A stretch of DNA of 64,000 nucleotides from Takakia lepidozioides (lineage: Eukaryota; Plantae; Bryophyta). Each line of letters opens with the position of its first letter. The stretch's first letter is position 1. The notes below the pieces were generated by a model. It was not told the DNA's origin and ran no database searches. It saw nothing but the letters and a program-made list of their open reading frames with translations. Below are positions 3,006 to 64,000 of this stretch, piece by piece. The stretch lies in NCBI GenBank assembly GCA_030704615.1, contig CM060732.1:47864001-47928000 (forward strand), read 5' to 3'. The position numbers and the translations under genes were made by a program.

Positions 3006-3028
3006 GTATCAACCTCGTCTATAGTGGA

Positions 3029-3055: not shown

Positions 3056-3193
3056 GGGGTCCGCGAGGGGTTGGACGGAGCGAGCGAGGTGCGAGGGCAG
3101 GAGAGAGCGAGGCCTGCCGTCCAGGCTTTGCTTGCTTCCGTCGCAGTGCGCTCCCAGCTCCTCGAGATTTGCACAGCTTGTGTTTGTGCACCC

Positions 3194-5649
3194 ATGGCGT
3201 CCACCACGGCTCCGACCTTGCGCTCTTCCTGGGCTTCGACTGTCGCCACTCGTGGTATGTTCATGTTAAGCTTCACCGCTGCATTTGATCTGTTGTGAGT
3301 GCATTCTGCGATTGGCTGATGCCTTCTCCAATTTTACATTACTGGCCTGCGTAATTTTCTCTTTTTTTGCATCTGCGAAATGTGTTTTGAAAGTGTGTTG
3401 TCCTTTTCCCTCAATGCGTCTCATTCTCCCTGCGTCTATCCGACCTTGAAGTCTTCTGCTGGCTTGCTACCTGAGTCCGCGGCTGGGGCCTCTAGCGTGA
3501 CTGATTGGCGTCTCATGGATACCTTGGGTATTTCCTAGGTGAAGGTGTGAAAGTACCGTTGTTAGTCGCAGCATTCCCCGGTTTGATCCTGCTTGAGCAA
3601 TTTCAGCTGTAGCAGGCAGCAAGGCTTTGCACGTTAACTTCCGTAGTTTTGAATTTGGCACCCATTGTTCGTTCATGGAGGGAAATTTGTTCAGAGGGAA
3701 AATTATGGGCGACAGCATGAAGAGGCTGTGTACTCAAATTTGCAAGACAACTGACTTCGGAAGGGTGGAGATAGCACACACAGAGATTAAGAAAATCAGA
3801 GGCCTAACACTCTGGATGGCAATCTGGCATGCCTTCCAACTAACCCTAGTACTCCATTCTCTGCCTCTATAAATGTCAACTGGTTGTTACCTGCATACAT
3901 TGTGACGTCTAAGAAGTGTTTGAGTCTAACAGTTACCATATTATTCTTCAGGGTGCTCGTCGTGATATTCATATTATGATGGAAGAGCTTCAGGTTTGCC
4001 TCTCTCTTGCCAAGTAACATTGCAATTCCAAATGTCTGGTGCCAAGTCAATTAACCATTCGTATGGTGATTTCTATTTTCTCCCCATGAACAGGTGATTC
4101 CTTCTCAAACTCTTGCCACGGAGTGTTGGTGAAAGTTTCTCCCATCCAGACTGCACCATCACAGGTGGTGAGGCGGGGGAAGGCTCGCCAAGCTGTCGTG
4201 CGTGCTGAATACAGGTGACGGCCTTGGAACCTGCATTGTTTGCTGATTCCTTGGTATGCTTCGGTTTTTTTCATTGTGGGAGATGATTGAAATGATGTGA
4301 ATTGCTACGATATTGCACATGTAATGTAAGATGATGTCAGAGCATTGTATGGCTGAAGCTTTTCGTTAACTTGTTAGAGTTATAGAAAAATGCGTCGGAC
4401 ATATTATCAGTTTGTCTCCAAAATAGGGTGCCATGCTGGTCCACATTTTGTCCTAATGTTTTCGAGCAAATGTGGGATGTGGCACTGATACTCCCTGTCA
4501 ATAACTTTGCAGCAGACGAGGAGGCGGTGCAGGTGACTTTGTTGCTGGATTCTTGCTTGGTGGGGTGGTGTTTGGTGCACTGGGCTACTTGATCGCACCT
4601 CAGGTATGTAGTCTATTCCTGTTGTGTGCATCCCTGGGTTCTAAACATGGTTAACCATGTTGGATACTGGAGTACATTAAAAAAAAATCGGCAGGTCATG
4701 AATTTCTGTTTATTTTCAGTGAGATTGTTTGAGTACGTTACAAAAGTTGTCCAACAGCTGAATTTTTGGCATTATTCTGCAAGGTTACCAAGTCCATTGC
4801 AGCAGCAGAGAAAGAGAAGGAGGAGGAAGAAGAAGGTCCACCAAAAAAGCTACCCAGATTTTTGGAAGATGATGAAGGACTCGAGGTGGGCTTGAACAAC
4901 TATGTTGACCCCCCAGGAGACGTACGTGAGTTGGGCCTGGGAGGCAGTCTTCTGGCCATATAAACCATGGTCTTGAGCTTGTTTGTTTGGTGCTAGGAAC
5001 TCTTGGGTGTGTTGTCTAGGTAGCTCTCTACCAGCTGCATATTGTGGTCTCATACTACATTGCCTTGATCATTGTCTGCGGAGGAACTCTTGGGTATGTT
5101 GTCTAGTCTACCAGCTGCATATTCCTTGTATTCTCATACTCCATCACCTTGATCATTGTCTGCCAAGCCAGACTCAGTTTTCCCTTGCTTTGTAACACCA
5201 AATGGTTCTAAAGGAAGCCCCCTTCTTGAAACGTTCCAGACCTCAATCCCATTGAAACTACTGGGTAGAACCTATGTTAAGTGGCAGAACCAATTCTCAG
5301 CTTGAAAGTTTCAACTTGCTACGCCGGACAGTTGTTATCACCACCTAGCTAACTATCTCAAACCCATGCTTGGAAAGGAGATTCAAAGTAACAGATGATT
5401 GTGCTACTAATGCGTCCAACCATTCAGGAAACAAAGATTGAATGGTGGTCATTATCTACATATCCTAAGGCATGCATCGCAAGACTCTGATTGTGTGCAT
5501 TCTGGGTTGTGCAGAAAACAAGGAAGAATTTGAATGACAAGATTGCGCAGTTAAATGCTGCGATTGATGATGTGTCTGCACAGTTAAGGTCAGATGAGGG
5601 ATTTGGCATCCCCAATGATAGCGCAGTGGAGCTGGAGTCAGCTGCTTAG
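3194..5649 (+). CDS. Small plastid inner-envelope-type membrane protein (At1g42960/At5g16660-like family), 169 aa, 5 exons
   Basis: Exons 3194-3254, 4094-4214, 4513-4603, 4784-4885, 5515-5649 with GT-AG introns join in frame. Product has a transit-like N-terminus ending VVRAEY, a TM segment GDFVAGFLLGGVVFGALGYLIAPQ, and a coiled coil GLEKTRKNLNDKIAQLNAAIDDVS. Confidence 0.85.
4996..5162. repeat. Imperfect ~85-bp tandem duplication in intron 4
   Basis: ggaactcttgggt...ctaccagctgcatatt...ccttgatcattgtctg occurs twice in tandem. Confidence 0.7.
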
Positions 5650-7104
5650 CCAGTATTTTGTGGTCTTTGAATAATTCCGAGTCTTGGTTCCTTTTCCTGT
5701 AGACCGTGGTTTGCTGGTGGGGGCAATGGCAGACTTGGAGTTTTGTGTTCTAGGTGGAGGTCCAGCTGCATTATTTTTGTAGGATGTGCCTTCTCAGGAA
5801 ATGTATCCACAGCAGTTAAAGAGATAGGACATTTCTCGCCCTTGAACGGTATGTCAAATGACTTGGTATGGCCTGGACCGCATTTTTATATTTATGAGAG
5901 ACCTTAGGGATCCTTGGTAGAAGCAACTCTGCGAAGTTCTTTGAGGGTAATCCTTAAATCAAGGCCGCATTAAACTCTGGCAGATCAGCTGCTGCGGCAA
6001 TCGCCTCCAAATAAGGGTTCGTTATGGGCAAAAATTCAAGTTGCCTCAACCACATTCTTGTTTGTTTTCCAAACATGACACTTAACTTTATATTATTGTG
6101 CACTGGGGTTGTGCTTGCATTGTACTATCACTAAGTTCTATTGCTCTCGGTTTCTGCAGCTTAGCAGAGTCGAGGCTTCTAAAAAGAACACGGCTGTTAT
6201 TCAAAACCATGGGGAACTTTTTTAGAATGTCCATTGATCCTTTAGAGGTGCTATGCAATCACCACAGGTCCCTGATGAACTGGTTCAAACATGCAATCTC
6301 ACATGATTTGGATTTAGTGCACAGGATATCTAACTAGTAAGTCTGCAAACCTTCAAAGTTTCAGCGTGGTGGCTGCATATCATATATAAATGTGATGCAA
6401 CAGTTTCAAGTTTCCCTCTCCCTCCCTCCCTCCCTCCCTCCCTCACTCCCACCAGCAAGCAGAAAGAACCAGGGAGGGCTCCATTCTCCATTCACACCCC
6501 TTGGCTGGATTTGAGGATATCAGATTAAACAATTAGCAGCAGAAGCTGAATTTGAGGATTTCAGATTAAAGAATCAGCTTCAGATGATGGAATGGTGGGC
6601 TCTATAGCTTCTCTTTCAACAATTTTGACGTTGGCATTACATTTTGTGAGGGGGTTTGGGATGAAGTGGGGCATGGAACTCACACGGGCAGCAGCAGCAG
6701 CGTTATGTAATGGAAAAGGAGGAGGGAGGGAAGAAAAGGCCGGCAAGCAGCACGTGTGAGGGAGAAACGGGTCGGCCCACTTTCCCGAGGCCGTCGTCGT
6801 CGTCGGCTCATTTCACTTGTGCAGCGCCGCACTGCATCCCCGACAACGCGGTGTATTTCCGCGCTAGAGCGGATGCAGAGGGGTACAGGGGGGGTGGGGA
6901 ATTGGGGAGGAGGGAATGGTTGGTGTGGGGGGGGAGAGACGATGAATAGGTGCACTTGGGTTGTGGCGGGACTGTTGTGTTTGTGCTGCCATGGGGCTGC
7001 TGTGGCCGCCGTCTGCTGATGTGCGAGTTGTGCGAGACTTGAGAAGCAGGGGTGGACGGAGGAGGTTGTAGGAAGAGGAGGGAGCGTTGGTGGTTGGTGA
7101 ATGC

Positions 7105-10100
7105 ATGAAGGGGGGCAAGATGTGCTCGTGTTGGGATGCCGTGGAGGGGGCGCTGGGCAACTGCTGGTCTAAATCTGGGAAACCCGACATCTCTCCCCCT
7201 TACAGTGTCAATAATTCTGGTATGCCTCTGCGTTCCTGCTCAAGTGGGCTTGCTTTTAGCTCCTCTGCCAGCTTGATGGGAACCCCACAGTTGTGGGTGG
7301 TCCTGTTTTTCAAGTTGTTATCTGCTGAAGTATGTGGCATCACTGTTGCCTTGTAAGAGGTTGTCTGATGTGCTCATACATGGCTGTGATAGCGAACTGG
7401 GTTATCTGGTTGTGCATCTAAACAGGACTGGGTTTTCTGCTTTTCAGTTCAACCTTGTCATGCATTGCATGGTGGAACGATGTGCAGTCACTTACAACAA
7501 GCCTGTAGACCTTCCCATCATCTGATGATCATCTTAAGAAGATGTCTGGGAAAACCATGAAGGTTCTGGCAGCTTGTAATATTCTGTCGAGCTTAGGTAG
7601 CTCTTTTGTGTCAGGTTATCTCACGTCGGAAGATGTCTGTTTGTTGTCAACATGCAAGCTTGTCTTTTCTCTATGAGGACTCTCTTTCCTTTTTGGGAAG
7701 CCCATGTAAGCGCGGAACCTACGGGAGAAATAGTGGGTTACTTCGCTCCCACGATAGAAGTGACAGTAATCTGGACTTTGCTCCTCTTGTGGGGGTTGTT
7801 TTGAGCAGGTCACGATCAGGTACGTGTGGAGGTCAATGAGAATGGGGCCCCAATTCCATTAAGTATACCCTCATCAGGTGAGGTTGGGACAGCCACTCCA
7901 AGAGCTTCCGAGGAGATAAGGCAGGGAGGGCACTTGCGGGTCTTTTCATTTCAAGACCTCAAAGCTGCCACACGCAACTTTCGTCCTGACAGTATGCTGG
8001 GGGAAGGGGGATTTGGAAGTGTTTACAAGGGTTGGATTGATGAGAATGGGACTGCTGCTGCCAAGGCAGGCACAGGCATGACTGTTGCTGTCAAGCAGCT
8101 AAATCAGGAAGGATTGCAAGGTCACAAAGAATGGCTAGTAAGGCTCACACCTTTCCCAGATATTACACCACATCAAGGGCCGTTGAGGTTGTAAGATGCT
8201 GTAGCTGCATGACTGCATGCGGCCCCGGGTACTATGAGAATACCCTATCTTAATGCCTCGATGCTACACAAGTGCAGTTTGTGCTTTGGCTGACGGACAA
8301 CCAAGCTTCTAAGGAGCTTCAATCCCTTACTGCATCCTTCAGTGGTCCTTGCTGGAGACTTGTGCTTTGACTGAGGGATAACCAAGCTGGCAAAGGGTGT
8401 CTCCCCCTTTGTCCATCGTGTGAAGTGGGCACTGCTTCAATTGCCAAGCTGCCTGGAGCCACTAAACTTCATAGTCCAGGTGCAGGTAGACAAGAAATGA
8501 TACGACCCAGGTAGGAAGTTCTGGTTAGTTATGTGGAGGAAATTGTGCTTAGATGCATGTAACATTTATATGTGCGGTTGCAGGCAGAGGTGAACTTTCT
8601 TGGTCAGCTTCATCATGCCAATTTGGTCCGATTGATTGGCTATTGCACAGAGGATGATCAACGGCTGCTGGTTTATGAATTTATGCCTCGTGGAAGCTTG
8701 GAAAATCATCTTTTCCGAAGTAAGTGACGATACTCCTTACTCTGTTGGGTGGTTTGTTACCAAGTAAGTGATTAAGCTTTGTCTGTCACTGCAAGTGCCA
8801 TCTGGCTCATGGTCGGTATCAGGAGACATTGCAGTGCCTACAATCAGGTTAAAGACACAGTTAGTCACACTATATGCATGTGCAATGGGGTTCAATGCCA
8901 TATGTATTACAGACCAGAAAGTGCCCTCTGTGATTTCCTCAGGGTTGAGCATTTGTGCCTGTCAATCACATTCAGTTTTAGTCTAAGAGAATTTGGAACT
9001 TAGTGTCCATATTTGTAGGAATATGGTTGAGTGTCATGGGAAAATGTGCTCTATATGTACTAGAGAACGCCTGGCTCGCCTAGGACGGGCTTTCCTGGCA
9101 TAGTCAGCCCTAGCTGACCTGTTCCCTGGCGTTAAGAGCTGGGGATCCTGAGTTCCCTGTAGTTCCCTTGAGTTCCCTAGCGTTGTCTCACGGGGCCACC
9201 GCTGATTCGTTATGCAGACTCGGCTGGGGATGCCGAATTGGCAGTGGCACTCCGCACCCTAATTGTGTGATATGATCGACCTCTAAAACGGCATAATCTG
9301 CCTCCGATGCTTTTTACGTTGTTACAGTTAGGCTTGGTTATAACTGATAATCCATGCGATTATTGACCTACTTATCCTTCTTTCACAAGATGCTCTAGGT
9401 GAAGTGGGTCCTTGGGATGCATAATTGTGACACTCTCAATCGTTCTAACACGCTGTTGTGACAACGTGATAGTATGCCGTAACTGTCCATAAGCACAATA
9501 GCTCTGCTGCATGGACCTGTAAGTTATGGTTTGCTGCAGGACCCTACTAGCACTATGGATTCTGTAATATATTTGACAGATGTGAAGCCACGGAAAGCTT
9601 TGGTGGGTAATGTACATACTTTGGCTTAGCACCTGTTTTGCTTGGGTATAATGCAGAAGGCGCTATGCCTCTACCTTGGTCAACGCGAATGAAGATTGCT
9701 TTGGGAGCCGCAAAGGGACTTGCTTTTCTGCATGAAGCAGTGAGGCCTGTTATTTATAGAGATTTCAAGACATCCAACATTTTACTGGATTCTGTGTGTA
9801 CTTATTCACCCTCCCTGTGATTTGAGACTGGGAATCTGAACAAGAGCATGGGGGGGTTATTGTTTATGTCGATGACTGTACATTGTTCGCCACGAAGACA
9901 AAACATGCATTGTGTTAATGAGTTTGGTTGGTGACATCCAGGACTCTCTGAGCTGTAAACCATGCGTAGAAGATGATTCATGCAACAAGGAATTTTCTGA
10001 TAGGTGAGGAGAAAGGGCTAAATTTGTCAGTGTAGGCAGCTGAGTCATGATCGGACATTCACTAATGGCAGGACTACACAGCAAAGTTATCGGACTTCGG

Positions 10101-13392: not shown

Positions 13393-14366
13393 ATTGCGGA
13401 GGCTACAAAACCTCTCCAATTGTGTTCTTGTGATCCAAACACGGAGCGTGGGGGAAAGAGAAGAAGGGGAAGAAAGACGACTTTGAGAAAAACCATGAGT
13501 CCGACTTGCTGTCAAAAGCCTCGCTCTTGCTTTTGCTATTCTGGTACTTGAACCTTCTTTCCCTTGTACTATTTCCAGCCTTGCTTTGTATGTTTTCTAT
13601 TTTTGTGGTTTGTACACAGAAACCCTGAAACTGTGTGCGTGAAATCGGGAGGGAGATGGAAGCAACTACTGCAACCACAGTCTGTGTCCCAGTCTCCTCT
13701 CACATACACACCCACACAACGCCCTCTCTCCTCTGGTCTCTCTCTCACACTCTAACCAGCTTGTTGTTAGTTGTGTCGTGCACTCTATGATACCTTGGCG
13801 CTTTCGAGTACCCATACTCATCGATCTGGGGTGACAGGGAATGCTTGCAGTTGCTCGTCAAACACTCAAATGCTAGTGGCTGCGTCCGCATGGTGAATAC
13901 ATTCTAAGTGCTGCTTTCCAAAGTCTATTCACCCGCCATACAATCCAGTGTCTTCTCCAACCTCAACCCAGTTTCCCTAATGATGTGTTAATTTTCCCGA
14001 GCTGAGGGTTTCACTTTGTTAGATTAAAGGAAAAAGACATCTCTTTTAGTACACACACTTATACTATGCACATATTTGACCTCTCTCAGTCTAGCTTGTC
14101 TCGCCTGCTCGTGCCTATTTTAGTTTGTGGGGATTACTAATCAGACAACACAAAGAGGCGAGGGAAAAAGTTATTCAAATCCATAAAAGATCATTTAGAG
14201 TTAACTCTTTCAATGGGACGTGTGACATCTGTCGCTAGCAGATCCGTTTTTATATGGCCTAGATGCTTATCCGGTCATACGATTTTGAGGATTATGAATG
14301 TTACAGAGATTGGGAGTAACTTCAAATCTTGCACAGTGGGCCCGCTACAACGCACCACCTTTCTAA

Positions 14367-14816
14367 TGTAAGTGCAAGGGGCTTGGAAAGATAGCTGCTC
14401 GATAGCTGTACCTTAAGTGTGAATCGTAAGCATCTGCCATATCTAATCTTTTGCAATACAAGACTTAAACTAGACAGCAGAACACGAGCTTGAGAAGAAC
14501 AAGACTATATCGGCTAACTCTCTCTCACACTGTGAAGAAAGCACTATGGAAGGACAAGGACTGCAGGAACAGTTGAGCGCTGAATTGAACATGAAATAGG
14601 GAGAAACTGAGTCATAGATATACCGTGAGCAGTACCTAAGTCAGTGGAGAGAACTACGGAGAAACTATAGCGTTTAAATGGTGGAACTCCTAAAATTATC
14701 TATGCCTTCACCGAACAGATCTAAGTCTGCTCTTATCTAAGTCTGATCTTATCTACGAGGTATCTACGTTGACCGCAACTACCAGCCGAGCTCAACTCCG
14801 GCTGTTAATGCCAACA
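14367..14816 (-). mobile_element. LTR-like remnant (TG...CA) with nearby PBS-like TGGTGCGTTG on the minus strand
   Basis: Bounded by tgta...ccaaca; PBS-like sequence lies ~9 nt from the end; no TSD found. Confidence 0.25.
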
Positions 14817-14829
14817 ATCTTCGTGCCGC

Positions 14830-15480
14830 TCCTCGTCTTCTTTGCTCATGAGCTTCTATTTGCATAAAGTAACAGCAGTTGATGGATGGGTTCCTTGAAA
14901 TATATTCAGAATTCCTGGCATCTATCTTTCCTATATTTGATTTTGACATTTCTTGTTCTGATTCTCAAAGACTTTTCAATCGCTTCAATCGGATCAAAGT
15001 GCTGAACTAAGGGTATCCGTCTTCACTGTCACGGTCACTACTTGCATTCGGAATGCATCATGTGGAAGCCCCCCTAATTTTTTTTAAACTTAGGAATTTC
15101 ACATCAACCTTAGAGTCAAAGAGAAACAAAAGGAGAATGTTCATCATAGAGGGTTTAATTTTGTTTCCCTCGAGTTTTGAGAAAACAATGGTTGTAAAAA
15201 AGTGGATGAAAGCCCCGGATTGGATTAAAAGGGCAAGGAAAATTAACGTTGCATATGTTTTTTGGTTCTTATTTGCAGTAGTCAACTAGTGGAAAATAGT
15301 GTGTCCAAGTACTGCATATTATGTGCCTCTCAGATGTCAGAAGAATTTGGTTTCTCTTTTCTTAAAGTCTGGCTGATTGGAGAACCTCTTCAATGAGGAT
15401 TTTGGGGCGAAGGGGAATCGTCCGTTTTTGGACTCTTTGTACGCTGCAGGCATGAAGCTGGTTGGAGCCATGGTGAGTGC
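14830..15480 (-). mobile_element. Degenerate LINE RT remnant
   Basis: Frames give YKESKNGRF..NQPDFKKRE (YKi.aK..Rl..Q.gF..R-like) and QKTYATLIFLALLIQSGAF (KAyDrv.w.Fl..l..Gf-like). Confidence 0.3.
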
Positions 15481-15889: not shown

Positions 15890-16290
15890 TTCTCTCAGCA
15901 ATCAAATTGTGGAGTTTATTAGATCGGAAGCTTTGATGTCCAAACGTAGGCAAATTAAAAAACATTGGGCTTCTTTCCTCTCGCACAATGCCATTATATT
16001 CCTTCATGAGCATAACTTGAACGATATTAACATTATGTCTATTGGTCCTTCGATTTGGCCGCCTCCACCAGCTTGGTGGAACCCCACAGTGGTAGACACT
16101 CGTAGGGGCACAACTATTCTCGTTTCTCCATCTTTACTATGTTCTTTCAGAGATATTCAAACAAGTTGGGTTGTAAGCAAGAGTGCGGTGCGCTGTCACA
16201 ACTTCATCCTCTTGTTTTGGGGCATGTGCTCTTCTTAATACTTATGCTCTTAATTCGAGCCTGGAAGAATAGCTCTTTGGTTGCTCATCA
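15890..16290 (+). mobile_element. LINE ORF2 APE endonuclease remnant
   Basis: SKRRQIKKHW..IIFLHEHNL (LQE-like), RRGTTILVSP, LNTYALNS..IALW (NiYAP..R..lW); cut off by the LTR at 16291. Confidence 0.55.
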
Positions 16291-32362: not shown

Positions 32363-33725
32363 AATTTTGTTTGCGTTTGTAGTGCATGTGCGAGCTTGCT
32401 GGGGAAGGGCAAAGAGGTCCATGGTTGCATCGTCAAAGCTAGAATTGTGGCAGATGTCATTCGGAACAATACCCTTGTGGACAGGGAGTGTTCAACAATA
32501 TGGCTGAGCAAAGGATAGAGTGTAATGACTGCTAATGAAGGCACCTTCTTCAATTTCACCTTGTTTTCCCCTCTTATCAGAATTGCCCCTAATTATTCAT
32601 GTATGAATTCTACAAGTTAGCTGGTTGAGTGAAGCTTTGATAGTTTGGAGTGACTTTGACATGATTCTGCCAATGTGACAACAGGAAAGTATCAGAAACA
32701 GGTAACACAGACGAGGAGAAGTTGTGGAATGAATACTTTTCTGACTCCAGTCAATGGTGGGACAATCGAGGCAAGAAGGTGAATGTTTGTTGGATTATAG
32801 AGAGTAGCAGATGCAATTGAGCGTAGGAACTAGTGTGATAAGTTGAGTTGGGTGCTTCCTAGAACAAGTCTAGGTTGTCATCATCAACTGCTAGCAACAA
32901 GGCAAGGTTGAATGCATGATTCGTGCGAGGCATGGATAGCTGAAGGAGCAAGGATAGAATGTGGGTGCAGATTCACCCAAGAGGGCCGGACTTCAAGCTC
33001 CAGATTAACTATGAAGCTACAAGAAACCTACATGGGTAGATGGTTAACTAGCAGCAATGGCACAATTGATAAAATCAGACATTGTTAATGAAGGCATCTT
33101 CTTCAGCACATTTCACCCTATTTTTCCCTCTTATCAGAATCGGCCCAAAATTTCCATGTTGAATTCTGCAAGTTAGCTGGTTGAGTGAATCTAGTTTGGA
33201 GTGACTTTGACATGATACTGCTATGTGACAACAGGAAAGTATCAAAAAACAAGTAACAAACATGAGGAGAAGCTGTGGAATGAATACTTTTCTGCCCCCA
33301 GTCAATGATGGGACAACCGAGGCAAAAAGGTGAATGCCTGCTACATTTCAGAGAGTAGCAGACGCAATTGAGCATAGGAACTAGTGTGATAAGCTGAGTT
33401 GGGTGTTTCCTAGAACAAATGTAGGTTGTCATTGTCAGCTACTAGCAGCAAGGCAAGGATGAATGCATGATTTGTGCAGGGGCATGGATAGCTGAAGGAG
33501 CAGGGATACAGTGTGGTCCAGATTCATCCTAGAGGGCCAAATTTCAAGCACAAGATTACCTATGATTCCCTGTGGATCAATAACTACAAGAAACCTCCAT
33601 GGGTAGATGGTCTATAATGTGGAACTCACTGAAGTCTTGCATTATGAGGATCAGAACTGCTTGGCAGCTTACTTGTACGAGGCCTTGACCCTTAGCAATC
33701 CCCAGAGCAGCAGTAGCTTTTGGGC
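32363..33725 (+). pseudogene. PLS-PPR fragment followed by two tandem copies of an intron-split OSB-type PDF motif
   Basis: FVCVCSACASL..GKEVHGCIVKA..DVIRNNTLVD, then EEKLWNEYFSDSSQWWDNRGKK|GT-intron-AG|IHPRGP(D/N)FK(H)K..SLWI..KKP.WV twice (~550-bp unit). Confidence 0.7.
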
Positions 33726-44199: not shown

Positions 44200-47100
44200 A
44201 TGGCACCAGAGCAGCAACAAAGTTGCTGTAGCGGAAACCTGTCACCATGTAATGGAGGGGCGCCATGCACAGATTCGGGAAAGCAGTTTTCAAAGCTGCA
44301 TGATCTACGAAATGAATCTGACATTGTGAGCGATGGTGCCGTGGACATCCATGGCTGCCCATCCGTGAAGACCAAGACCGGTAACTGGAAGGCTTGCTGC
44401 CTGATTTTTGGTTAGTGATCCTCTTCCGTCTTTCTTCTGATACTTGGGTGCCTGCATATAACTCGTACTAAGATTAAGCTCAAAGTTTCAGTGCTGGACT
44501 ATTACAACAAACAGCACAGCTTAAATTTTACAAAATTGCTAGATCGTGATCCAGACGTCGAAGTTTCACCATGTGAGGTCAGAAGTCCTTAACGCACACT
44601 CATCTTACGCGAATCCAACTTGACCAGGCGGACGTTGAAAACGGATCCGTAACTTCTTAAACCACTTTCAGAGGCACATGTTCATTGAAGCTGTCCGAGA
44701 GCATTCCTTCACTGATCTGGAAGCAGAAGCTTAGACCTAAATTTTAAATATTTCCTTGTTGTCTGTGGACTTCTCTGCGATCTGGAATTCTCATTGTGCA
44801 TACAAAACTAGTAGACCTACCTCAGCTGAAGATTGGAGAGATGAAAACATTAGTGAGCTGGAGGACGATGCATGCATACCCTGCTGAAACCTCCGTGCAA
44901 TGCAAAATGAAAATGTTGATACTGGTCTATAGTCTTCCGGATCCTCGTATCTGATTCCAAAATAAAAGTTTTAATTTGATTATTAATATGTGCCCAAGCA
45001 TGTGAAGCAGATCTCGGCGGCTAGTCCAGCTGATGTGTAACTTACAAAATGTGCAGGTTGCGAAGTGTGTGAGAGGGTGGCATTCTATGCGATATCATCT
45101 AATTTAGTTACATATTTGACGACTGTGCTACGAGAAGATATTTCGGATTCGGCGAGGAATGTCAACAACTGGGGAGGGACAACGTTTATCACGCCTTTGA
45201 TCGGAGCCTTCATTGCTGATGCATTTTTGGGGCGTTTCTGGACGATTGCCACATTCTCCTGTGGCTATTTTCTGGTAAGTGTGTCGTACTTTGGCACTCG
45301 AAGTATTTCCTTAGTTCCTTTCTCACAATCTATATAGATGAATTTACCTTTCGTCATGACCATTACTCAGATCAAGCTACCCCACTTATATTAGCCCTTA
45401 GACATCCTCGTTGACAAACCACCCATCACTGTCGTTACTGCAAGCGCCCATGGCTATTTACCTCTCTCTTGTCCTTACTTAGTAGACTTTAATCATTTAG
45501 CCTGGGCGCTTATGCCTGATCCTCCTTCTTTTTCAGGCAAGTACTATGATCTAATAAGACTGATTTTAAGGCAACTTCAAACACAGTCTAAACAAGTTGT
45601 AGGTGTTAAGTTGTTGTTTCGATCTCGATCTCGCATATGCAAGTGCTCTTAAGTACTTAAAGTTCCTGCCACGGCCGCGCAGCTATCCTTCCTCTGTACT
45701 GCGTGCTCTCACTCAGCTGTGAAGGTCTGGGCTAAGCTTGCGCCAGTAGGTGTTGGAAGCTAGATGTAATCAGTCATGGGTGATTTTTCTTGCTGTCTTT
45801 GTCAGGATTCCAATTTCTGTCTATCTGATGAAGTAACTCTAATCCTTCATGTGCTTCACTATCGGTGGGCTTGGATGTGCAGGCACTAGTGTTTGTCACA
45901 ATGTCAGTGTCACTGCCATATTTGAAGCCTCCAAGCTGTGACGCTATGCAACTTACAGGGAAGACCTGTCAAAAAGCCTCAACGGGACAGATTGGGTTTT
46001 TCTATTTCTCCTTATATCTAATGGCACTTGGTGCCGGGGGAATAAAGTCTTGTGTAACTGCTTTTGCGGGAGACCAATTTGATAAAGGCGATGCGCGTGA
46101 GGCTAAGCGCTTGATGTCATTTCCGAATTGGTGGTTTGTAAGCATCAGTTTTGGCACCATGCTCTCTGTGAGCCTATTGGTATATGTGCAGGACAATGTG
46201 GGGTGGTCCTGGGGGTATGGCGTGCCTACTGCCATCACCGGCTTTGCCACGCTAGCCTACCTGGTTGGTACACCCCTGTATAGGCACCAGATCCCGTCTG
46301 GGAGCCCTTTGACCCGCGTGGCCCAAGTTCTTTTCGCTGCGACGCGTAAGTGGAGCATTGCTGCTCCTTCCAATCCGGAGCTTCTGTATGAGTTTGATGA
46401 CAAGCAGGCAACCTTAAGCCCTCGCTGCAAAAGACTGCCCCATTCTCCAAGTTTATTGTAAGTCGCGAGTTCTTTTTACTATTTGGCCACTTTCCAGGGC
46501 GCTTGCTTTGAACCTGTCCGGGATCACCGTCTGCCAAGGAGGCAGTGATCAATGTGATGCATTATTTGTACGTGTACGTACGTAGTTCAGCTAACTAGTG
46601 CCAGATCCTTTCAGAAAAAATAACCTGTGACCCTAGGTAGGTATACTTGTCCACAGGCTTATCATGCTTCAGAATAGTTGGACACTACAAGTCCTTCTGA
46701 GTCCAACAAAAGTTTTCTTTGCACTGGCACCTTGCCCACTTTCCAACTTCTGGCCAGTTTGCACACTCGCTGTCAAGATGTGTGCTCAAAAATAAAAGAA
46801 GAGACGGGAAAGAAAACTGATAAGATCGAGACCTCTACTTTAGAAGATGACCGTGTACAGACGTACGGGTGCAAATTATGCATTGTCCTTGCAATGTTCA
46901 CAATTTGTAGGACTGCAAGACCGTCTTCAAAAGGTGTTGAGTCCTGGGCAGAAGGAGAGATTTTATGTACCTAAGTACCTCGGCGTCAATGCGTTGCAGT
47001 TGGAATCTGGGTGAGTGGTCGCATGGTTTTCTTTCCTAATGTCGTCAAGTAGTTCCATGTGCAGCTTATGTCTTATCATTCTATACGGAAGCTACACACC

Positions 47101-48078
47101 GGAAACAACTACAGTATTTGGAGTTTCCTGCATGATTAGTCCTCAGCTGTTTTGACATGTACATGCAGGTTTTTGGACAGGGCAGCCACACCCATGACAG
47201 AGGGGAGTGTACATAATTTCGATACCCCCCCAAATCCCTGGACGCTATGCACAGTTACCCAGGTAGAGGAGGTGAAGCTATTGGTGCGAACGCTTCCAAT
47301 CTGGGTGACGAATTTGATGTTTTCGACTGTGTTTTCCCAGGTGGGCACTCTGTTTTTGAACCAGGGAACCACAATGGACCGTCATATGGGACCTAATTTT
47401 GAGATTCCAGCAGCATCAATGCCGCTGTTTATTACAGCCACCATTTGCGTCTTCTTACCTTTGTACGATAAGTTCTTTGTGCCTTTTGTGCGGGAGATAA
47501 CGGGTGATGAGCGTGGCCTCACCATGCTGCAGCGCATTGGAGTAGGCCAAATTATCTCCACACTCTCCATTGCGGTTGCGGCTGTGGTAGAGATGCGACG
47601 CCTGCATGTGGCACGGGTCAATGGGCTGCTGGATGCAATTAATGTGCCCATGTCCATTTTTTGGCTGCTCCCGCAATACATGCTGACAGGTGTTTGCGAG
47701 GTTTTCATCAGCGTGGGGCAGATGGAGTTCTTCTTGGACCAGGCCCCTGACTCTATGCGCAGCTTGGGCAACGCGCTCTACCTCAGCACTGTAGCAGTGG
47801 GAAGCTTTGTTAGCAGCCTGCTGGTCACCGTCGTCACCAAGATCACCTACAATTCCAATGGCGGCTGGATAGGGAACAATCTAAATCGTAGTCACATGGA
47901 CTATTTTTACTGGATGCTTACAGCCCTAAGTTTTGTCAACACCATTATCTTTGTGCTGTGCGCGCGCTGGTACACTTACAAGTCTACGGTCATTAGACGG
48001 AATCTTGCAGAGTCGAGTGACTCCGCAGACTCAAGTGGCCCCCTCACGGGCCACTCTATCAACGTCAACAGTCTGTAA
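44200..48078 (+). CDS. NRT1/PTR family (NPF, NPF8/PTR-like) transporter, 637 aa, 4 exons
   Basis: Exons 44200-44410, 45057-45274, 45883-46457, 47169-48078 join in frame. KTGNWKAC, ExxER motif EVCERVAFY, GAFIADAFLGRFWTI, GAGGIKSCV.AFAGDQFD, LCTVTQVEEVK, LQRIGVG, QAPDSMRSLG. Confidence 0.93.
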
Positions 48079-54969: not shown

Positions 54970-55633
54970 GGCTGGGACTTAGCCTCTTTTTGTCTCCCGC
55001 GCTACCAAATGTTTTCGTAGTATCGAGCCGAAGCAGGGAGAACTTATGTCATGGAACGGGATGATCGCAGGATATGCAATGCAGGGGCGTGGGGTTGAGG
55101 CTTTGCGACCTATTCTTGAGCACTGATCCAGCTTTCTTGAGCTTATTCTTAAGCAAATGATGTAGGAAGGGCGAGGATATGCACAGTGGGGGCGTAGTAT
55201 AGAGGCTTCGGAGAAGTATGAGCAAATAATGCGGGAAGGGGTGAAGCCGGACCGAGTCACGTTCATTTAAGTTTGCAATATCACCCTCGTGGTATGCACA
55301 GCAAGGCCGCGGGAAAGAGGCTTTGGAGACCTACGATCAAATGATGGCGGAAGGGGTGTGCCCGACCACATCACGTTTGATTGCATTTGCAATGCATGCG
55401 TAAGCTTGGCAGCCCTGGAAAAGGGCATCTATGGTGACATTGTCAAAGCTGGAATTATACCCGATGTCATTCTGAACAATACTCTCATGGACATGTATGC
55501 AAAATGTGGGTGGATGAAGGGTGCAAAGGGAGTGTTCAACAGTATGGCTAAACGAGATGTGGTGTCGTGGAGTGCGATGACTGCAGGATATGCACAGCAA
55601 AGGCGCGGGATGGAGGCTTTGGAGACCTATGAG
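54970..55633 (+). pseudogene. PLS-class PPR gene remnant
   Basis: SWNGMIAGYAMQGRG.EAL, EGVKPDRVTFI, NACVSLAALEKG, NTLMDMYAKCG...AKGVFNSMAKRDVVSWSAM; stops and deletions. Confidence 0.85.
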
Positions 55634-56093
55634 CACCTTCTTCAATACACTTCAGCCTGTTTTCCCTGTTATCAGAGTCGTCCCTAAATTTTCAGGTTGA
55701 ATTCTGCAAGTTAGCTCGTTGGTGCAAAAAAATGAATGTCTATTGGAAGCGCAAGTCACACTACGGCAATGGGGGTGGGGGGTGGTAGCGATGCCCGACC
55801 GACCTCCCTGAGGTCGTTAAGGGGGTCTAAAGCCGTCACGGCCAAGTCCCAAATACCGACCCCTCAGGGGTCAGCAAGGCGTCATTAAAAAGGCGTCGTT
55901 AAAAAGGCGTCGGTAAATCGGGCAGTTAAGACGAGAGCTCCTATTCTGTCAGTTGCCAGCGCAATTCCATCAGTGACGAAGGTCAACGAAGGTCAACACG
56001 AACATTTCAATCTGCCCAACGAACCTGCCCGGAAAAATTAAAATTTTAGAGTTTGAAATTGAATACAATATCACATTCCAAATGACAGAAGAG

Positions 56094-59000
56094 CCACCTT
56101 CGTTCAACTTAGGTCCAACAAATTTATATTTTTACCTGCATCCCTGAACATTTTCGCATCACACGATAAAACCAAGGTAGAGATATAAATGGCAAAAAAA
56201 CATGCAGAATTCTTCCACGTACATGCAACCTAGTTTCGAATGTTGCAGTGACCAAAGAAGCCATAAAGAGGGTCACCTTCGTTCACCAAAGGTCATAGTC
56301 GATAGCTGGGCAACCCAAGATGTAAAAAATAGGAGGGCCGAAGGTACAAGCTTGACCCGGTCGGGTGTGATCAAATTCGGAGAAATTGATGGTGGGAATT
56401 CACATGCATCTACCATAGGTACAAATTGCACAAGTGATAAATGCAACAATAGAAAACGAGACACCCTCGTACTCCCTGGGTCATGTCAATTGCATGAATG
56501 GAATATATATCTACACAATGACGACCAAGGAAAAAACAAAATGCGACAAAATGGAAGAATGCATTAACTGGGGAATGCAGTTTAGAACATTCGAGATGAT
56601 GGGAGAATTTGACATGCTTCATAAATGTAACACATGTGCTAACAAATTGCAAGTATTTGACAAATATCTTCTGGGGTTGTGTCATCTGATCTTATACACC
56701 ACAACAAGCAAGGACATCACATCGGACCTGGGATTAAAAAGCATTATTACCCATTTTTTTGAAATGTGACATGTATGGTCCCAAAATGTAAATATCCCAA
56801 ATGTGATGAAATGTGTTATTCACAAGTGTCGTCAGATCCCAAATCTATTACACAGTCGGGCAAAACATCGACCGAGCTTGTGCCCATACTACTGTTGGAC
56901 ATGTCACATGCCTCGGTAGCCTCGTCCAGAACATAAACATAACTACCATTCCCAAATAAGGACTTCTTCCGTGTCCAGGTGATGGTGTTATCCCACTCCT
57001 TGTCGTGATTTGATGCCGCTTGTCTTTGGGCCGCCACCTCTGCATACATTGGGAGCTCTGGAAACAACTGTGGGCTCAGGGGCAACTCAGCGTCATAGGT
57101 ATACAGTGGCCCTCCCATCCTCCGCCTCTTCACGACCGGTTGCCTAAACATTTGTGGTCATATGGTCATAAACATTTGTGATCATATGGTCAAAACCACA
57201 TACAGAATGGAAACGATTAATACAGCAACGTTGCAAGCAGGGAATCACCAGATAATGAGAAAATATTACCTGTTGATGAGATCCAAAACCCTCGTACCCT
57301 CAAAAACTCCATGAGTGTCTGATAGAACGCAGGGGATTTTTCTTTGCGTCCTCTATAAGGGTTGCCTTCGGGTGATACTGTCATCTCAAATGTTGGAAGA
57401 TAGTGTCTCAACAGATCCCCGGTGAAACAATCAGGGTTCTTTGAAAAAACGGACCCTTGTTCACTGATCTGAAAGTCCTTGCAGGACTCCAACACCAAAC
57501 AATGCACTTCAAAGACAAATGTCTGTGCACATACAAAGGAAGGGAAACAGATTAGCACTCCAACAAATACCACCACAATTGATGGAAATGTAAATCAAAA
57601 GGGGAAGAAATTTGCACTCCAAGAAACACCACCACAAACGCCTGAAATGTAAAGTATAAGATCTCACCTTCCCTGTGTTGCAATTCAAAGCTCTGTCATT
57701 GATGCATGTCCACGTCCTGAACAGTCTCATCTCCTTCTTCCTCATGTGCCTATGTATCGACGTCCACAGATCACTTGGCGCCACAACAATGAAGCAACCA
57801 TTATCATCCATGAGTTGGTACGCTATCTCAAATGCGTGGCGCATGTTCTCATGAGAATACTCATTCCACTCTGGGACATCATCATCATAGGGGGTCAATG
57901 ACGGATCAACAAGATCGACACTGTGACCGTCCGGAAGCTCGCAGAACACCATGTCTGCAGTTTCAAGGTTACGTGTACCAGTATTCTCACATCCGACATC
58001 ACCAAGGAACTTGGAGATTGAATACAACAAGGACTCCTATTCCATCTTCTCGGATTTAATGAGGGTTGCCAATGTTTTTAATCCCCCTGCAAACACAAAA
58101 CCTTGGAATCCGGCAGCAGAGGAAGAACCAATGTATTTGGCTGCCCAGACCATGTCGTCACTTTTAGTTCCACTATGTCTTCTTTTCTTCTTGTTCTGGG
58201 TTCCGTCATTTGCACTTCCTGCAAGTTTCAACTCTCCACGATCAGATGCAGTTTGTTCTTTGTCTCCTTTGTTCCTCTTGCCCACTGTGATGTACTGTCT
58301 CTGTTTGTTTTTTGCTTTTTCAGCTTCCAAAGCTGCAATCTTTCATCTTCCAAAGCAGTTGCGGTGTTGAGGGCCTCTCGACGTTGTAGTTGTCGCTGGG
58401 TATTCTCAGCATCAGACGCCCCGGTCGGATTGTCCTTACCAACCTTGGCCTCCTCAGCAACAATCTTCTGTCTCTCACCAGCCGGACCTTCCTTGGCAGG
58501 GTAGTCCAGATACCAGGGGCATAGAGATGCACAAAAAGGGGTGATGTTCCCATACTGGTCAGTTGTGTACATAGTAATTCTGTCGTTGTCAATAGTCGTC
58601 CAAGCCTCGACGACAGAGGGTAGATGATCAATTCCATGAACCTCAAGAAGATACCTGAGACAACGACAATACGAGTTTAATCTGTGTATACGCTCCTCTT
58701 ATAATATGTACATCATTGTAAAAGTTGGTATACAAAGGTCCATGCAGTCAATCGAGCCCACCCACTGCCCACCTATGTCAAACGAAGGTTAAAGAATATA
58801 GCAAATATCTGCTGCTAGGACGGATGCGGATTGCTGGCAGACTAGTGTACAGTGTGTAGATTTAAATAAAATTTATATATCTGATTACCATATCATATGA
58901 TTTATATCTGCATAATCAGAGAGATACATACAGATATCATAACATAGTATATATATGATGGATCAGTTATGGATCATTAATCATCACTAATACAACACAA

Positions 59001-60281
59001 GTATACACGTTACTTGTCATAATCATCTAGTCATGACTAATCCATCTAGCAGTACATAGACTTTATAGATTAAATACCAGATATTTCGTAGATATTAAAT
59101 TGTCACTGCATATCACATAATATTTTAACATTATGCAGTACTGACATTAGGGCGACATAGCTCCCTGCGCACCTCCGAATCTAGGGTACCTCCGTAAAAC
59201 GAAGGTGGCTTAAAGGCCAAAGCAAAGATGAATAGCATTTAAAACTATGTGTGCAATCGACTACACACGATTATAGACATTCATAGACTTAATCTGTATC
59301 TACGTCGTGTATAATATATATATATATATAAACCATACATGTATATTGTAGTCTAAAGATTTTACATTGGAATAGTCGTATAACACATTACATCAATTAC
59401 ATAGACAATATGATTAGTCTATCGACATTATGTACTATAGTGTAGAATCAATAGACTGAAAATAAATATAAATGGACTCAAATAATTTATATTCTACCTG
59501 TCATTACGGCTACACTGTCACCTCCGTCAACCGAAGGTGGGTACATATTAAAGGGTACCATAAAAAATAAACAATATTCTGAGATATATTTAAAATAGAC
59601 TAACTAGATAAGATATTAGTATCGGCGGATAAAATAAAATATTTGAATTAGTAGATTATACTTATCATTCATGGGCACCTTACTTCACAACTGCGCCTCT
59701 AGGGAACCTCCATCTAACGAAGGTGGGTACATTATTTACAATATTTACATTATTTATTAGCATCGGCATATATTAGAATGAGAGTGACCGTTGAGAAAGA
59801 GAGTACATCGAGGACCAGTTACCATATGGATTTAACCCGCAACTGTTTGAAATATTTATTCGCTCAAAACAATGTTTTGAGCTGCTCCAAACGCTGAAAT
59901 CGCTCAAAACAAGGTTATATAAGCTCAAAACAGTGAAGACTCTCAAACAAAACTGACCTGCGTCGGACGAAGGTCGAAGCTTGACCCGGACTTGTATGAT
60001 CAACTTTGGAGAAATCGATGGCGGGAATTCACTTGCATCTACAATATTTCAAAATTGATATAGATAACCCTATAAAACGAGACACCTACGTCCTCCTTGG
60101 GTCATCCATTTATTGCGTTTTTTGTTTATGTTCTCCCATTCAGCCTCCACCTTCGTCAACCAAAGGTGGCCTATCTTTCAATTTGCAGGCACGTGCGGTG
60201 GACGGAGGTGGCTTATCTGTCACTAAAGTAACATGCTTGGTTGTCTATTCATACCTTCGCCTGTTTGGACAACGAAGGTGG
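56094..60281. repeat. About ten dispersed copies of a 21-bp palindrome CACCTYCGT-N3-ACGRAGGTG
   Basis: Copies at ~56094, 56274, 58769, 59188, 59519, 59706, 59955, 60147, 60190, 60253. Confidence 0.75.
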
Positions 60282-63200
60282 CATAGAAATTGAGATTAGG
60301 GGATCATTAACAGCTGTGGCTCACAACAAGCCCTGAACTACCAATAGAACGGAGGTGGGAGCTTGGACAATGGTGTACCTGTAAACCAGTCTTTTAGCGG
60401 CACGAGGGCCGCCTGAGTCATCTGACAGCAGCATTGTCCGGCGATGGGATTCAATCTCCGATAGGAATAATTTCTTATATGCCATCTTCTTCCATTGTTG
60501 TATCCACCGGTCCAAGGGAGGTGCAGTTCCCTCATCCATGGGGAAATCCGTGATCTTGTCGAGCAGCTCCATAGCTTCCGTTGTTACATGTGGACATCAT
60601 ATTGGTGTTACGGAGCAGTCCATAAAGAAATACATGCAAGTACTACAGGAGTATCGTAGGGGAAGACTCGTGACCTGAAACCACCATGTCTCTTTGGACA
60701 ACCACTTGTCCATTATCTTGTCTGTGATCTTCCCCTCCACCCCTGGAAAAAAAGCTTCTATCTGCTGGGCAGGTGCTTCAATATGCAGCTGCAACCACCT
60801 TTGCTTTTTTTCTGGGGAAACTTCCGAAGTCACAATCAAATATGCTCTCTCCAAGCCCGCTCTTTTCCCCCCCTCTTGACATGTTTGTAGAGTTTTCAAG
60901 AAAATTGGACCCGTTGCCGGGATCACAAATAGGCAACTTCTTTACCATCTGCTTAGATGTCTTCGCCTTTGCACTGTTTTTGGCAGCAACAATGGCCACC
61001 GCCAACCCGTCACGGTTTCGTTCTTGCTCTGGTGTATCGGCACCGTACCTTATTTTGGCTTGTGCAATGGCCTTCATGATGTCCGCCTGCATGCCAATCA
61101 AACAATCCTCATGATCGAATCTTATGGACCACCTTAAGTGTGCAATTCCAACGGACAAGTAATCCATGAAGTGCAATGTAAGAAGAACTCACATGCGCCA
61201 AAATCTCAATCATAGCCTCTTGGGTCATCGTATACAAGGTTTTCCCGGGCTCCTTGGCCAGAGATTTCTTGTAGTGCCGCTTGGTGAGGAGCCCCTTGTA
61301 TTGCTCTATTGGGCTAATACCTATCATTTGAATATACCACAGGTTGTGTATGTCCTCGGTCTTTACAAATGCCTTCTCATTAATACTGCAAGCAACGCAA
61401 CACAGGCACTTAAAGTTTGAAGTACGGACATGATGAAGATGAAATTGGCATTCCTTAACAGTCAAGTCATGTGCTACAGGTCAAGTAGCTTACGCGTTTG
61501 TTTGGAACATGGCAGCTTTGAGCATGCCGATTGTGTTCGCCTGGCATCGAAGAATTTTAGATTGCACTCGCACATGCCATTGTTTCTCCTTTGCCTTCAC
61601 AGTATTGATCAATTTTAACCACGTGTGCAGGCAGTGATTGTCATCCCACACGTAAAACATACGATTTTTCACCCATGACCGATTATCATCAGCCTGACAC
61701 TCTGCATCAAACTCGTCGCTAACCTGTTGCCAGTGTGCACTCCACCATGCTCGGATCTCATCTGTGACCAATGCGGGGTTCTCCATCTCATCGGTGGGTG
61801 TCAAATAAAAATACCCGTGCCCTTCCACATACCCATTCGTAAGAAAATAATCTTTCAATGCATCTCCCGCATTCTCCCCTACAATCGGTCTAATCTTTGG
61901 ATTCAAGGTCATCCTACAAAGAGGCACTTTGGGAAGCAAGGTGGAATAACTTATCGCAAGTTTGTTGACCACGGACTGCAGATTTCCTGCGTTGTGGTCT
62001 TCCAGCACAAGCAACTGCTTCATGGCATCGCCTTGATCCAAGATCTCCTCCGTTGTAGATGCAAGCCCAGCGGGATCGGGAACCGCAGGGACTTCCTCCT
62101 CATTGTACAATGAATGCGTGTTTGCTGCTGGCATATCCATGGTTGATGCAGTAACTGAAATAACCGGGCTGTTCAGAATACTCACATCTGGCCTCGCAAG
62201 GACCTGCTTGTGGGGAGACAAAAAAGCTTGAGGGCCCCCGTAAGACGACTCCCACTGCCCACGATGCTCAATAGCCTTGACTACTTCACCCCCGCCTGCG
62301 ATGGCCTTCTTCGAGGGAGCTGCAAGGTGTACGCGGCCGAGCTCGCTCACAGTTGGCTGGATGGAGCGATCGACATAAGGGGTGGCTAAGAACTCCCCAT
62401 CTAGATCCTCCAGAACGCCATCCGCGATAGGAGGTAGCGGCAAACAATCCTGCAATATGTCCGCTTTCTCTAATAGCGTGCTAAGACCTCCGTCTGAAAA
62501 CTGGCTGCCTCCCTCCAAATCCTGCAGACAATGAACGCAAGCATAATGAAAAGTAGAGCAAAAACAAAAACAAACAGCAAAGCTTAGAAACAACAAAGCC
62601 ATTGGCACGGGGGCTGCTATTTCATGAGCGGCATGAGCATGAGCGGGATAAAAAAAAGCATGAGCGGGCCATTGTCTGTCCACGGAAATAGGGTTAGGAG
62701 GCACGGAAATAGGGTCATGTGGACTCGTCATAGCAATGAAATGCAACATTTTATTGCAAATTTTGTGGCAAGCCACGTCTATACAAGTGTGTCCTAACTG
62801 TCATAGCAGGAATGGGAACTACTCTCCTACACCTTCCGAGGAACTTGGCCCTCCTTCTTCCTCATCCCCCTCATCCCCCCCATCCTCCGAGCTTTGTGAT
62901 GCATCGGTTGCAGTATGCCTCTCAAAAATGCCGTCCTCTCCTTGGGGGACTGTCCACCTCACCTCCTGGGAATCTTCTGCCTCTTCTCCCCCACTTTCCT
63001 CAGCATAATCCAAGACAAATCTACGAGCCCGACGGGCTCTAATAGCTGCTGCCTCCTCCCTCATCTTCATTTTCTTGAGGCTTGCCTCGTCTAAAATCTG
63101 CTGTACACGACTAGGTTCGGAACACCTCCTAATGGACACCGAAGCAAGCCGGGCAGCATAAGTAGGAAGGATGTAGTCCCTTTCTGGACTAGGCATGAAA

Positions 63201-63958
63201 TCCCCCCTGGCAAAAAAAGGCACGTTCCTCCTGCCCATGAACTCCGGTGTAGACGTCCTTCCTGCCGTACTTGGCATCCTACAGTAAGAACAAATCCACT
63301 TCAAGAATGTCAATACCAGCAAAAGCAGAAAGGGTTTTCAATGAAATAAGAGAGCAAAGGGAGGTGCCTCACGAAATCTGGAGGCAACTTACAATGCGAC
63401 CACTCACTCGTACACCGGGGGCTCCTCGGCCTCGATCCCAACTTGTTCCTCCCCCTGCTCCTTCTCGGATTTTTCCTCATCCTCCGAGGATGCCTCTTCC
63501 TCTTTTGGCAGACGTTCAGCCGCTGCAAGTTCCGAGTTGTGGAGGGCAGTATCTGGCTCGAAGGCGAACACATGCCTATCGGACAACGTCCCTGCCCACA
63601 TTGAAGCACCTGAGGAACAAAGCAGGCGGTTAATAGTTTGCAGCATGCAATTGCAATCGGGCCAGGGGACAAACTGAGCACGTGAAGGCTTACCCGTGCC
63701 GCATGTGAGGTCCAGAATCCGCCCTTGGACATCCGAGCACGTCTCCATGAGGGTTTGGATGAAAGCAGGGCTCCGGGTCCGGCTGTACCGCCATGGTTTG
63801 CCTGTCTTTGTGTCCTTCGGCATACTGGAGTGGGGCACATAGTTGTAGAGGACATCTTAGGTAACAGGGTCCACAGCGGCATCAACAAGACGACCGTCGT
63901 TGCGGAATTTGAACGTAGACCCTCTCTTCACAAAGCAATATGCCTCAAACACCAATGT
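56816..63958 (-). pseudogene. Multi-exon gene: beta-class amino-MTase-like domain + acidic linker + ParB/Srx-like domain + second MTase-like domain (5' part outside window; carries stops/frameshifts)
   Basis: Spliced 63958-63694 + 63609-: RSPAFIQTLMETCSDVQGRILDLTCGTGASMWAGTLSDRHVFAFEPD (motifs X-I-II). ParB-like KVPLCRM..IRP..LKDYF..GY..FYVWDDNHCL (61930-61500). Second MTase ADMVFCELPDG..AFEIAYQLMDDNGCFIV..KEKSPAFYQTLMEF/EGTRVLDL (57958-57270). Confidence 0.75.
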
Positions 63959-64000
63959 CTGCACATCCACAAAAGAGGGATCAACTCCGGGATCTAGTTT

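Follow-up and report, generated by a model that had tools for sequence, protein, structure and literature searches.

Two adjacent, related DNA-transposon copies as the probable source of ParB- and methyltransferase-like accessory genes in a Takakia lepidozioides locus

The 64,000-nucleotide stretch of land-plant DNA analysed here (Takakia lepidozioides, contig CM060732.1; below, the window) carries at positions 55759-64000 a region that is probably, at a confidence of roughly 0.7, a composite of two related DNA-transposon copies, each with an accessory gene on the minus strand, as are all the genes of interest in this part. The upper copy belongs to an abundant element, H, of which the window includes the tip; the lower one, L, is a low-copy decayed paralogue with the full layout of the gene family, whose product would target its own element through private palindromes. 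The initial annotation had placed here one CACTA-like transposon with a single spliced gene for a ParB-like and a methyltransferase-like domain. The transposon-borne family joining these two domains was recovered, but not as one gene at the positions that were named. The locus is presented as a new land-plant case of transposon accessory genes of a kind that has been described only recently.

The boundary at 62609 and the abundant element H

Contigs from four public runs, including the DNA run X1 and the runs X6 and X9, were aligned to positions 58001-64000. The summed contig depth of X1 amounts to 40,000-87,000 over 62601-64000 versus 45-350 over 58001-62600, with a step of about 500-fold (several hundred-fold) at 62609, the depth figure not being equal to a copy number according to the warning of the tool itself; the X1 contigs identical to the locus have depths of 22-29. 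In all four runs, the contigs have loose ends at 62608/62609, with mutually disagreeing flanks beyond, and therefore 62609 is taken for a transposon end. Thus, the depth step together with the divergent ends makes 62609-64000 the tip of the abundant element H, and the sequence below it a separate low-copy unit, L. Consequently, the methyltransferase motifs quoted by the initial annotation (in H) and the ParB-like exon (in L) belong to different, adjacent units rather than to a single element. The features of H are as follows.

62609-64000, minus strand: end of element H, the terminal 1.4 kb, of very high copy and continuing past the window, with the 3' part of a gene of the ParB-methyltransferase family (gene 1)
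63694-63958, minus strand: gene 1 exon containing motif X (RSPAFIQTLMET) and motif I as far as ILDLTCGTG, its first half; an X9 contig covers 63692-63958
63610-63693, minus strand: gene 1 intron of 84 nt, GT..AG; the X9 joint 63607->63692 skips 84 nt, with the cut shifted by +2
63392-63609, minus strand: gene 1 exon carrying the remaining half of motif I, then motif II (GASMWAGTLSDRHVFAFEPD) and an acidic stretch
63278-63391, minus strand: gene 1 intron of 114 nt, GT..AG; X9 joint 63277->63392
62819-63277, minus strand: gene 1 last exon, where the conserved tail motif (Y-x-LP-x-YA ... RR-x-FV-x-D/E-acidic) and the stop codon are found

The minus-strand reading RSPAFIQTLMETCS..GRILDLTCGTG / ASMWAGTLSDRHVFAFEPD is present in the translations, as had been reported, and the GT-AG intron predicted between its parts (63693-63610) was found to be removed, at exactly 84 nt, in a 770-nt minus-strand contig of X9 with 207 nt of flank. 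The 114-nt skip is carried by a second X9 contig, and neither of the two joints was found among the contigs of the DNA run X1 despite the enormous depth there. The 114-nt intron bypasses a stop at 63404 and joins the methyltransferase-like exon to the last exon (63277-62819). An in-frame stop lies at 63859-63857, where other copies of X1, X6 and X9 have a sense codon; this copy of gene 1 is damaged, and the family is not. H is described as a very abundant element, transcribed if X9 is RNA as guessed, with the last three exons of its accessory gene inside the window.

The relatives compared were the loci L001, L003 and L004 of the liverwort Riccia and the metagenome contig L002 (positions 1-7196). 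The gene 1 exon 63694-63958 aligns with the X-I region of the Riccia methyltransferase-like domain. The tail open reading frame (ORF) of L002 matches the window at 63211-63128 (E 0.004), and the tail motif of gene 1 recurs at the C-terminus of the Riccia proteins P0163, P0164 and P0013 and in L001 at 13965-14282.

The terminus of H reads GGGGGCTGCTATTTCATGAGCGG, which occurs once in the window, and the end defined by the reads begins with GGGGGCTGCTA (also given as GGGGGCTG...), not with CACTA. Short subterminal direct repeats, CACGGAAATAGGGT in two copies and CATGAGCGG in three, stand at 62681-62722 and 62620-62665; they may be transposase-binding sites. The alignment of 55740-55960 against 62572-62800, in search of a terminus shared by both units, gave nothing convincing, the resemblances at 55777 and about 55932 being short, post hoc and not evidence.

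Gene 2 of unit L and the two domains of the family

The older paralogue, decayed and low in copy number, occupies 62521-56816 and shows every part of the family layout: the ParB/Srx-fold domain, the long middle region, the domain resembling beta-class amino-methyltransferases and the tail exon. The window exons were examined singly, and the Pfam and fold tests reported below concern these exons or their relatives, never a joined window protein.

61493-62521, minus strand: gene 2 exon, disordered in its N-terminal region and coding for the ParB/Srx-fold domain at about 61951-61493
60324-61465, minus strand: gene 2 middle-region exons, with profile matches at 60941-60600 (E 0.007) and 60596-60324 (E 0.06)
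58231-58698, minus strand: gene 2 exon with the next part of the middle region, the CPWYLDYP block (profile match at positions 288-372, E 3e-4)
57650-58030, minus strand: N-terminal half of the gene 2 methyltransferase-like domain A, with ELPD (57940-57929) at the position of motif IV
57272-57534, minus strand: gene 2 exon of domain A, paralogous to the gene 1 exon 63958-63694, with KSPAFYQTLMEF as motif X and WISSTG as a degenerate motif I
56816-57151, minus strand: gene 2 tail exon (ELPMYAE ... YVLDEATEA), compared by eye with the tail motif of the family

The tblastn search of the family proteins against the window recovered the ParB-like exon and the tail exon only, and therefore profiles were needed for the rest of gene 2. 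The middle-region profile, built from Riccia, L002 and Adiantum sequences, matches 60941-60600, 60596-60324 and 58698-58231 in the order of the family, i.e., gene 2 is colinear with it; as the homology is colinear on both sides, the 1.6 kb between 60324 and 58698 are regarded as an intron or insert. The counterpart of the gene 1 exon with motifs I and II is missing. Together with the degenerate motif I, the altered ParB box described below and the in-frame stop of gene 1, this bears out the decay ascribed to the copy by the initial annotation.

The search with the exon 62521-61493 among 1.84 billion representatives yielded 214 proteins at E<=0.001, the best at E 1e-21. The named relatives are from the liverwort Riccia sorocarpa, with dozens of paralogues on all chromosomes, and from the ferns Adiantum capillus-veneris and A. 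nelumboides, and the remaining ones are metagenome or Logan contigs; the word-indexed homologue searches found Riccia paralogues only. The family alignment (A1) contains the blocks IPLCRL, VR, GY and F-x-VWDGNHRL-x-AW, with the consensus WDGNHR, in which N is invariant and G and H are present in >=90% of the sequences. As noticed in the initial annotation, the window copy has DDNHC (61645-61631) for DGNHR, so that both Gly and Arg of box II are lost; the Arg is required for nucleotide binding in ParB-fold proteins (10.1101/2025.10.10.680097). The AlphaFold model of the domain from A1 reached a mean predicted local distance difference test score (pLDDT) of 84.6, mostly >90 over residues 50-210, and its first 40 Foldseek rows were ParB, Noc, KorB, PadC and sulfiredoxin (best E 0.018, probability 0.99). 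The strong structural rows were all ParB, Noc, KorB, PadC, SerK, Srx or SbnI, and in a scan of 48,161 chains independent of Foldseek, 14 reached Z>=2, the top 11 being ParB/Srx-type proteins. Thus, the model matches the ParB/Srx fold only, and on this modelling the fold of the family, proposed initially from the letters of the box, is considered established.

In Pfam, ten long homologues showed only an unrelated NIF domain, in the 1176-residue protein P0104 of Adiantum capillus-veneris, whose gene model combines three parts, the ParB-like region, a stretch resembling motifs X/I and a NIF/FCP1 phosphatase domain, and is probably a chimeric annotation spanning a transposon and a host gene.

The full-length Riccia relatives consist of a ParB-like N-terminus, a long middle region and a C-terminal methyltransferase-like domain; in P0153 (1207 amino acids), the ParB-like domain is situated near residue 280. 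The C-terminal domain of P0153 matches the X-I-II part of PF01555 at E 5e-5 and 23.7 bits, below the gathering cut-off of 26.7 bits. The Riccia relatives altogether score 23.7-26.2 bits (E 5e-5 to 9e-6; profile positions 165-218 of 221), the shorter paralogues being the highest; the precomputed PF01555 flag is set on five of 26 Riccia paralogues, and L002 reaches 13.6 bits. Foldseek with the model of P0153 residues 925-1175 (predicted template modelling score 0.72) retrieved CcrM at E 1.3e-10, then M1.HpyAVI, M.BceJIV, M.MboIIA, M.RsrI, the rotifer N4CMT and M.PvuII, down to E 2e-6. Thus, the comparison with PF01555 and ParB/Srx recommended by the initial annotation gave fold matches for the window ParB-like exon and the Riccia methyltransferase-like domain, but no score above the Pfam thresholds. 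The UniRef name 'Trimethylguanosine synthase', given to P0153, P0151, P0154, P0158 and other Riccia proteins, was rejected, as Pfam and the fold search lead to PF01555-type DNA methyltransferases; it is probably a misleading automatic name.

Two paralogous domains of this type are present in the window, domain B of gene 1 (63958-63392) and domain A of gene 2 (58030-57272); in tblastx, they share two blocks of 60-65% identity with an identical spacing of 177 nt and like placement of the exon ends. Against the Riccia domain profile, the exon 58036-57512 reaches E 7e-6, and 27 of the 30 nearest Atlas clusters of domain A contain PF01555. The Rossmann-type fold with the permuted order IV ... X-I-II was found on the Riccia relative, and the window exons align in equal order, which upholds the beta-class X-I-II arrangement claimed initially. 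Motif I, which binds S-adenosylmethionine (SAM), is present as ILDLTCGTGG in gene 1, VIDFAGGWG in Riccia and VLDMNVGLG in L002, and is degenerate in gene 2.

Private palindromes and the class of the carrier

Blocks of palindromes interrupt and follow gene 2, and the palindrome of unit L itself is 19-22 bp long.

58700-60320, no strand: palindrome-rich intron or insert in gene 2, with ACCTYCGT-N3-ACGRAGGT sites
55970-56484, no strand: block of half-sites and palindromes downstream of gene 2, of which 56336-56484 is duplicated at 59965-60105
55728-55969, no strand: uncertain lower boundary of unit L, with a CACTA 5-mer at 55759, short palindromes and three GGCGTCGTTAAAAA-type repeats

The pattern ACCTYCGT-N3-ACGRAGGT, which was derived from these same data, has six full sites in the window, all within 56275-60167, versus a shuffle mean of 0.2. 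The repeated motif ACGAAGGTS has ten matches in the window versus 0.57 expected, nine of them within 55976-60280. The two duplicated segments, 56336-56484 and 59965-60105, are 76.5% identical over 149 nt (E 1.5e-27). The X1 depth in the bin 60001-60200, which coincides with the segment duplicated at 56336-56484, is 351 versus about 100 in its neighbours; with about three times their depth, this segment is considered a somewhat more abundant repeat.

Such palindrome arrays accompany the gene in the window and in three of the four related loci, with different motifs in each. In L002, the 24-bp palindrome ATTACTAACGAYRTCGTTAGTAAT recurs about 21 times and accounts for the greater part of every intron and of the two flanks; Riccia L001 has two distinct families, one on each side of the gene (4013-4274, 8494-9371 and 14351-15141), and L004 a third motif, and no palindromes with perfect 8-nt arms were found in L003.

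Below the lower boundary, a segment of about 95 nt (55633-55727), upstream of the supposed CACTA end, has two more copies in the window, at 33090-33183 and 32555-32627, with 82-86% identity. Also outside the region are a PPR fragment (55289-55640) and, some 8 kb upstream of it, NPF/POT-family transporter ORFs (45865-48078) with apparently intact exons.

As to the class of the carrier, the Riccia locus L001 has a 33-nt inverted repeat (2138-2170 and 15990-16022), 13.8 kb apart, around the gene. Inside this pair lies an ORF (6379-7632) with weak matches to PF21056 (ZSWIM-RNaseH; E 0.045) and PF10551 (Mutator-like element, MULE; E 0.11), whose nearest named Atlas clusters are also MULE/ZSWIM. A Mutator-like carrier is, therefore, the best guess, drawn from the sequence of L001 and not from the window. 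On L002, an ORF with the hAT-type DUF659 (6035-6451) lies on the strand opposite to the gene and may belong to a neighbouring element.

Readings of the locus and known systems

The composite of two units has several points against it. Run X9 is only guessed to be RNA. Pfam searches with ten window ORFs gave no match at E<=1, and no window piece alone reaches the threshold; PDB sequence searches with single exons and the family profile gave chance matches only. The support for the methyltransferase fold comes from a Riccia relative modelled at a pLDDT of 68, not from the split exons of the window. The ParB-like family, searched as single sequences and as a profile, had no match among Pfam and PDB sequences, Pfam ParBc included, and its model gave in the tool VIA Z values of 7.0-7.5 over 91-98 residues at a root-mean-square deviation of about 2.6 A, below the Z of 8 under which the tool itself grades a match as middling. 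The lower end of L and the superfamily of H and L are not fixed by the window data, and the MULE-like ORF was found neither in two further Riccia loci (within 10 kb) nor in the window. Finally, the position of motif IV reads ELPDG in window domain A, DLPTG, DMPSG or DLPSG in Riccia and CFPHN in L002 (that of gene 1 falls outside the window), with no (D/N/S)PP(Y/F/W); since the DPPY catalytic loop is replaced, canonical N6A/N4C methylation by the family is doubtful on sequence grounds.

The latter point leads to the strongest alternative, of equal anatomy but with a dead methyltransferase-like domain, the protein serving only as a sequence-specific factor like TnpA of En/Spm, bound to the palindromes, that aids transposition or represses the element, with no DNA modification. 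This is possible, though on balance unlikely: the unconserved catalytic tetrapeptide and the PF01555 scores just below the cut-off speak for it, as do the inactive methyltransferase domains known in DIRS1 elements (PMC4738411), but motif X and the D-x-x-x-G-x-G of motif I are kept in Riccia, L002 and gene 1, many copies retain the domain, and the Pro with the following small residue is conserved among the Riccia paralogues, so that the loop would seem to be under constraint and not free to vary. A stranded or once-domesticated host gene at 62521-56816, now a pseudogene with H inserted beside it and no part of a transposon, would suit the low depth (about 2-5 copies), the undefined lower end and the lack of a transposase ORF in 55759-62608. 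It is, however, improbable in view of the private palindrome blocks, which are of the kind found in the transposon-borne relatives, of the visible decay of box II and motif I with the loss of the motif II exon, and of the multicopy Riccia relatives on all chromosomes.

Least probable of all is the initial classification, one CACTA (En/Spm) element starting at 55759 with a single spliced gene for both domains. The 5-mer at 55759 is indeed followed by repeats, of which the motif ACGAAGGTS is real, and the CACTA-superfamily Plavaka of red algae do bear ParB-type accessory genes (10.1101/2025.02.11.637652). However, the CACTA is a single 5-mer, the opposite end of such an element falling outside the window, and it stands in a 17-mer unique in the window that was matched at <=3 mismatches in 18 of 100 shuffles, and the similarity of the flank 55633-55727 to its two window copies breaks at about 55728, not at 55759. 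The boundary at 62609 splits the two domains and does not begin with CACTA, no Tnp2-type transposase ORF was found within 55759-64000, and the neighbour ORF in Riccia has a MULE-like look.

Within the preferred composite of H and L, the accessory protein would recognise the private palindromes of its element through the ParB-like or an adjacent region, so that its methyltransferase-like module, which would bind SAM, is carried to the DNA of the element itself. The outcome might be a mark on this DNA, or its organisation for transposition or against silencing; self-marking, which the initial annotation had inferred together with anti-silencing, has previously been proposed for algal transposons. 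A bolder proposal is that land-plant transposons encode a ParB-fold clamp fused to a non-canonical amino-methyltransferase, a protein that would load on element-specific palindromes and write N6-methyladenine (6mA), N4-methylcytosine (4mC) or another mark on the DNA of its element, this self-recognition countering host silencing and having helped one family to its very high copy number in this genome; we hold it to be a rather unlikely speculation. Both window copies are probably non-functional. Were proteins of the family active, bryophyte and fern transposons would carry their own module for DNA recognition and modification, a design for which the existing reports concern algal transposons and phages only would extend to land plants, and a concrete testable case would arise with palindromes as the sites and SAM and nucleotide binding as the activities. 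The locus itself adds direct evidence that the abundant family splices as predicted, and sets a young, abundant copy beside an old, decayed paralogue.

Transposon-borne ParB-methyltransferase genes beside inverted-repeat arrays were published for algae in 2025, with a proposed role in self-binding or self-modification (PMC12477816; 10.1101/2025.02.11.637652), and ParB-linked methyltransferases had been listed by Iyer et al. in chlorophytes and haptophytes (PMC4738411); no report of such transposon-borne genes for land plants was found in the literature. The accessory protein of Sola1-1_Ec32 of Ectocarpus, of about 1,100 amino acids, to which the accessory genes PAG2 and PAG3 of red-algal Plavaka and Mutator elements are related, is like the present family in joining a ParB-like and an N4C/N6A-type methyltransferase domain in one transposon-borne protein and in having inverted-repeat arrays by the gene, the likeness being one of architecture. 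However, the present family is hosted by land plants (Riccia, Adiantum and the organism of the window) instead of algae, and its carrier seems closer to Mutator than to Sola or Plavaka. In the red-algal Plavaka, a ParB-2-oxoglutarate (2OG) oxygenase gene stands by the inverted-repeat arrays and the methylase gene is separate (10.1101/2025.02.11.637652); in Bostrychia, ParB is fused to the 2OG oxygenase with the methylase as a separate protein, whereas the plant family joins ParB to the methyltransferase-like domain.

The closest bacterial analogue, as the initial annotation rightly supposed, is the fusion of ParB-fold and PF01555 domains typically carried by phages (10.1101/2025.10.10.680097). 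The phage and prophage fusions, of ParB-CTPase fold, have the same folds in the same N-to-C order and are likewise linked to mobile elements, but the plant proteins differ by the middle region of about 600 amino acids, the introns and the replaced DPPY loop. In the tblastn search against 50,697 phage records, the methyltransferase part did not get beyond E 0.009-0.3 and the ParB part had no match, and therefore a phage origin cannot be claimed from the sequence. With the beta-class enzymes, such as CcrM, M1.HpyAVI, M.RsrI, M.PvuII and the rotifer N4CMT, the family shares the fold, the order IV...X-I-II and the glycine pattern of motif I, but it lacks their (D/N/S)PP(Y/F/W) and scores at or just under the PF01555 threshold. 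Among liverworts, MpDN4MT1a/b of Marchantia are of the PF01555 type, as are the Riccia relatives; MpDN4MT1, described as a sperm-expressed host gene pair with no ParB domain mentioned, retains TSPPY (10.1101/2021.02.12.428880), whereas the present family is without the PP-aromatic motif.

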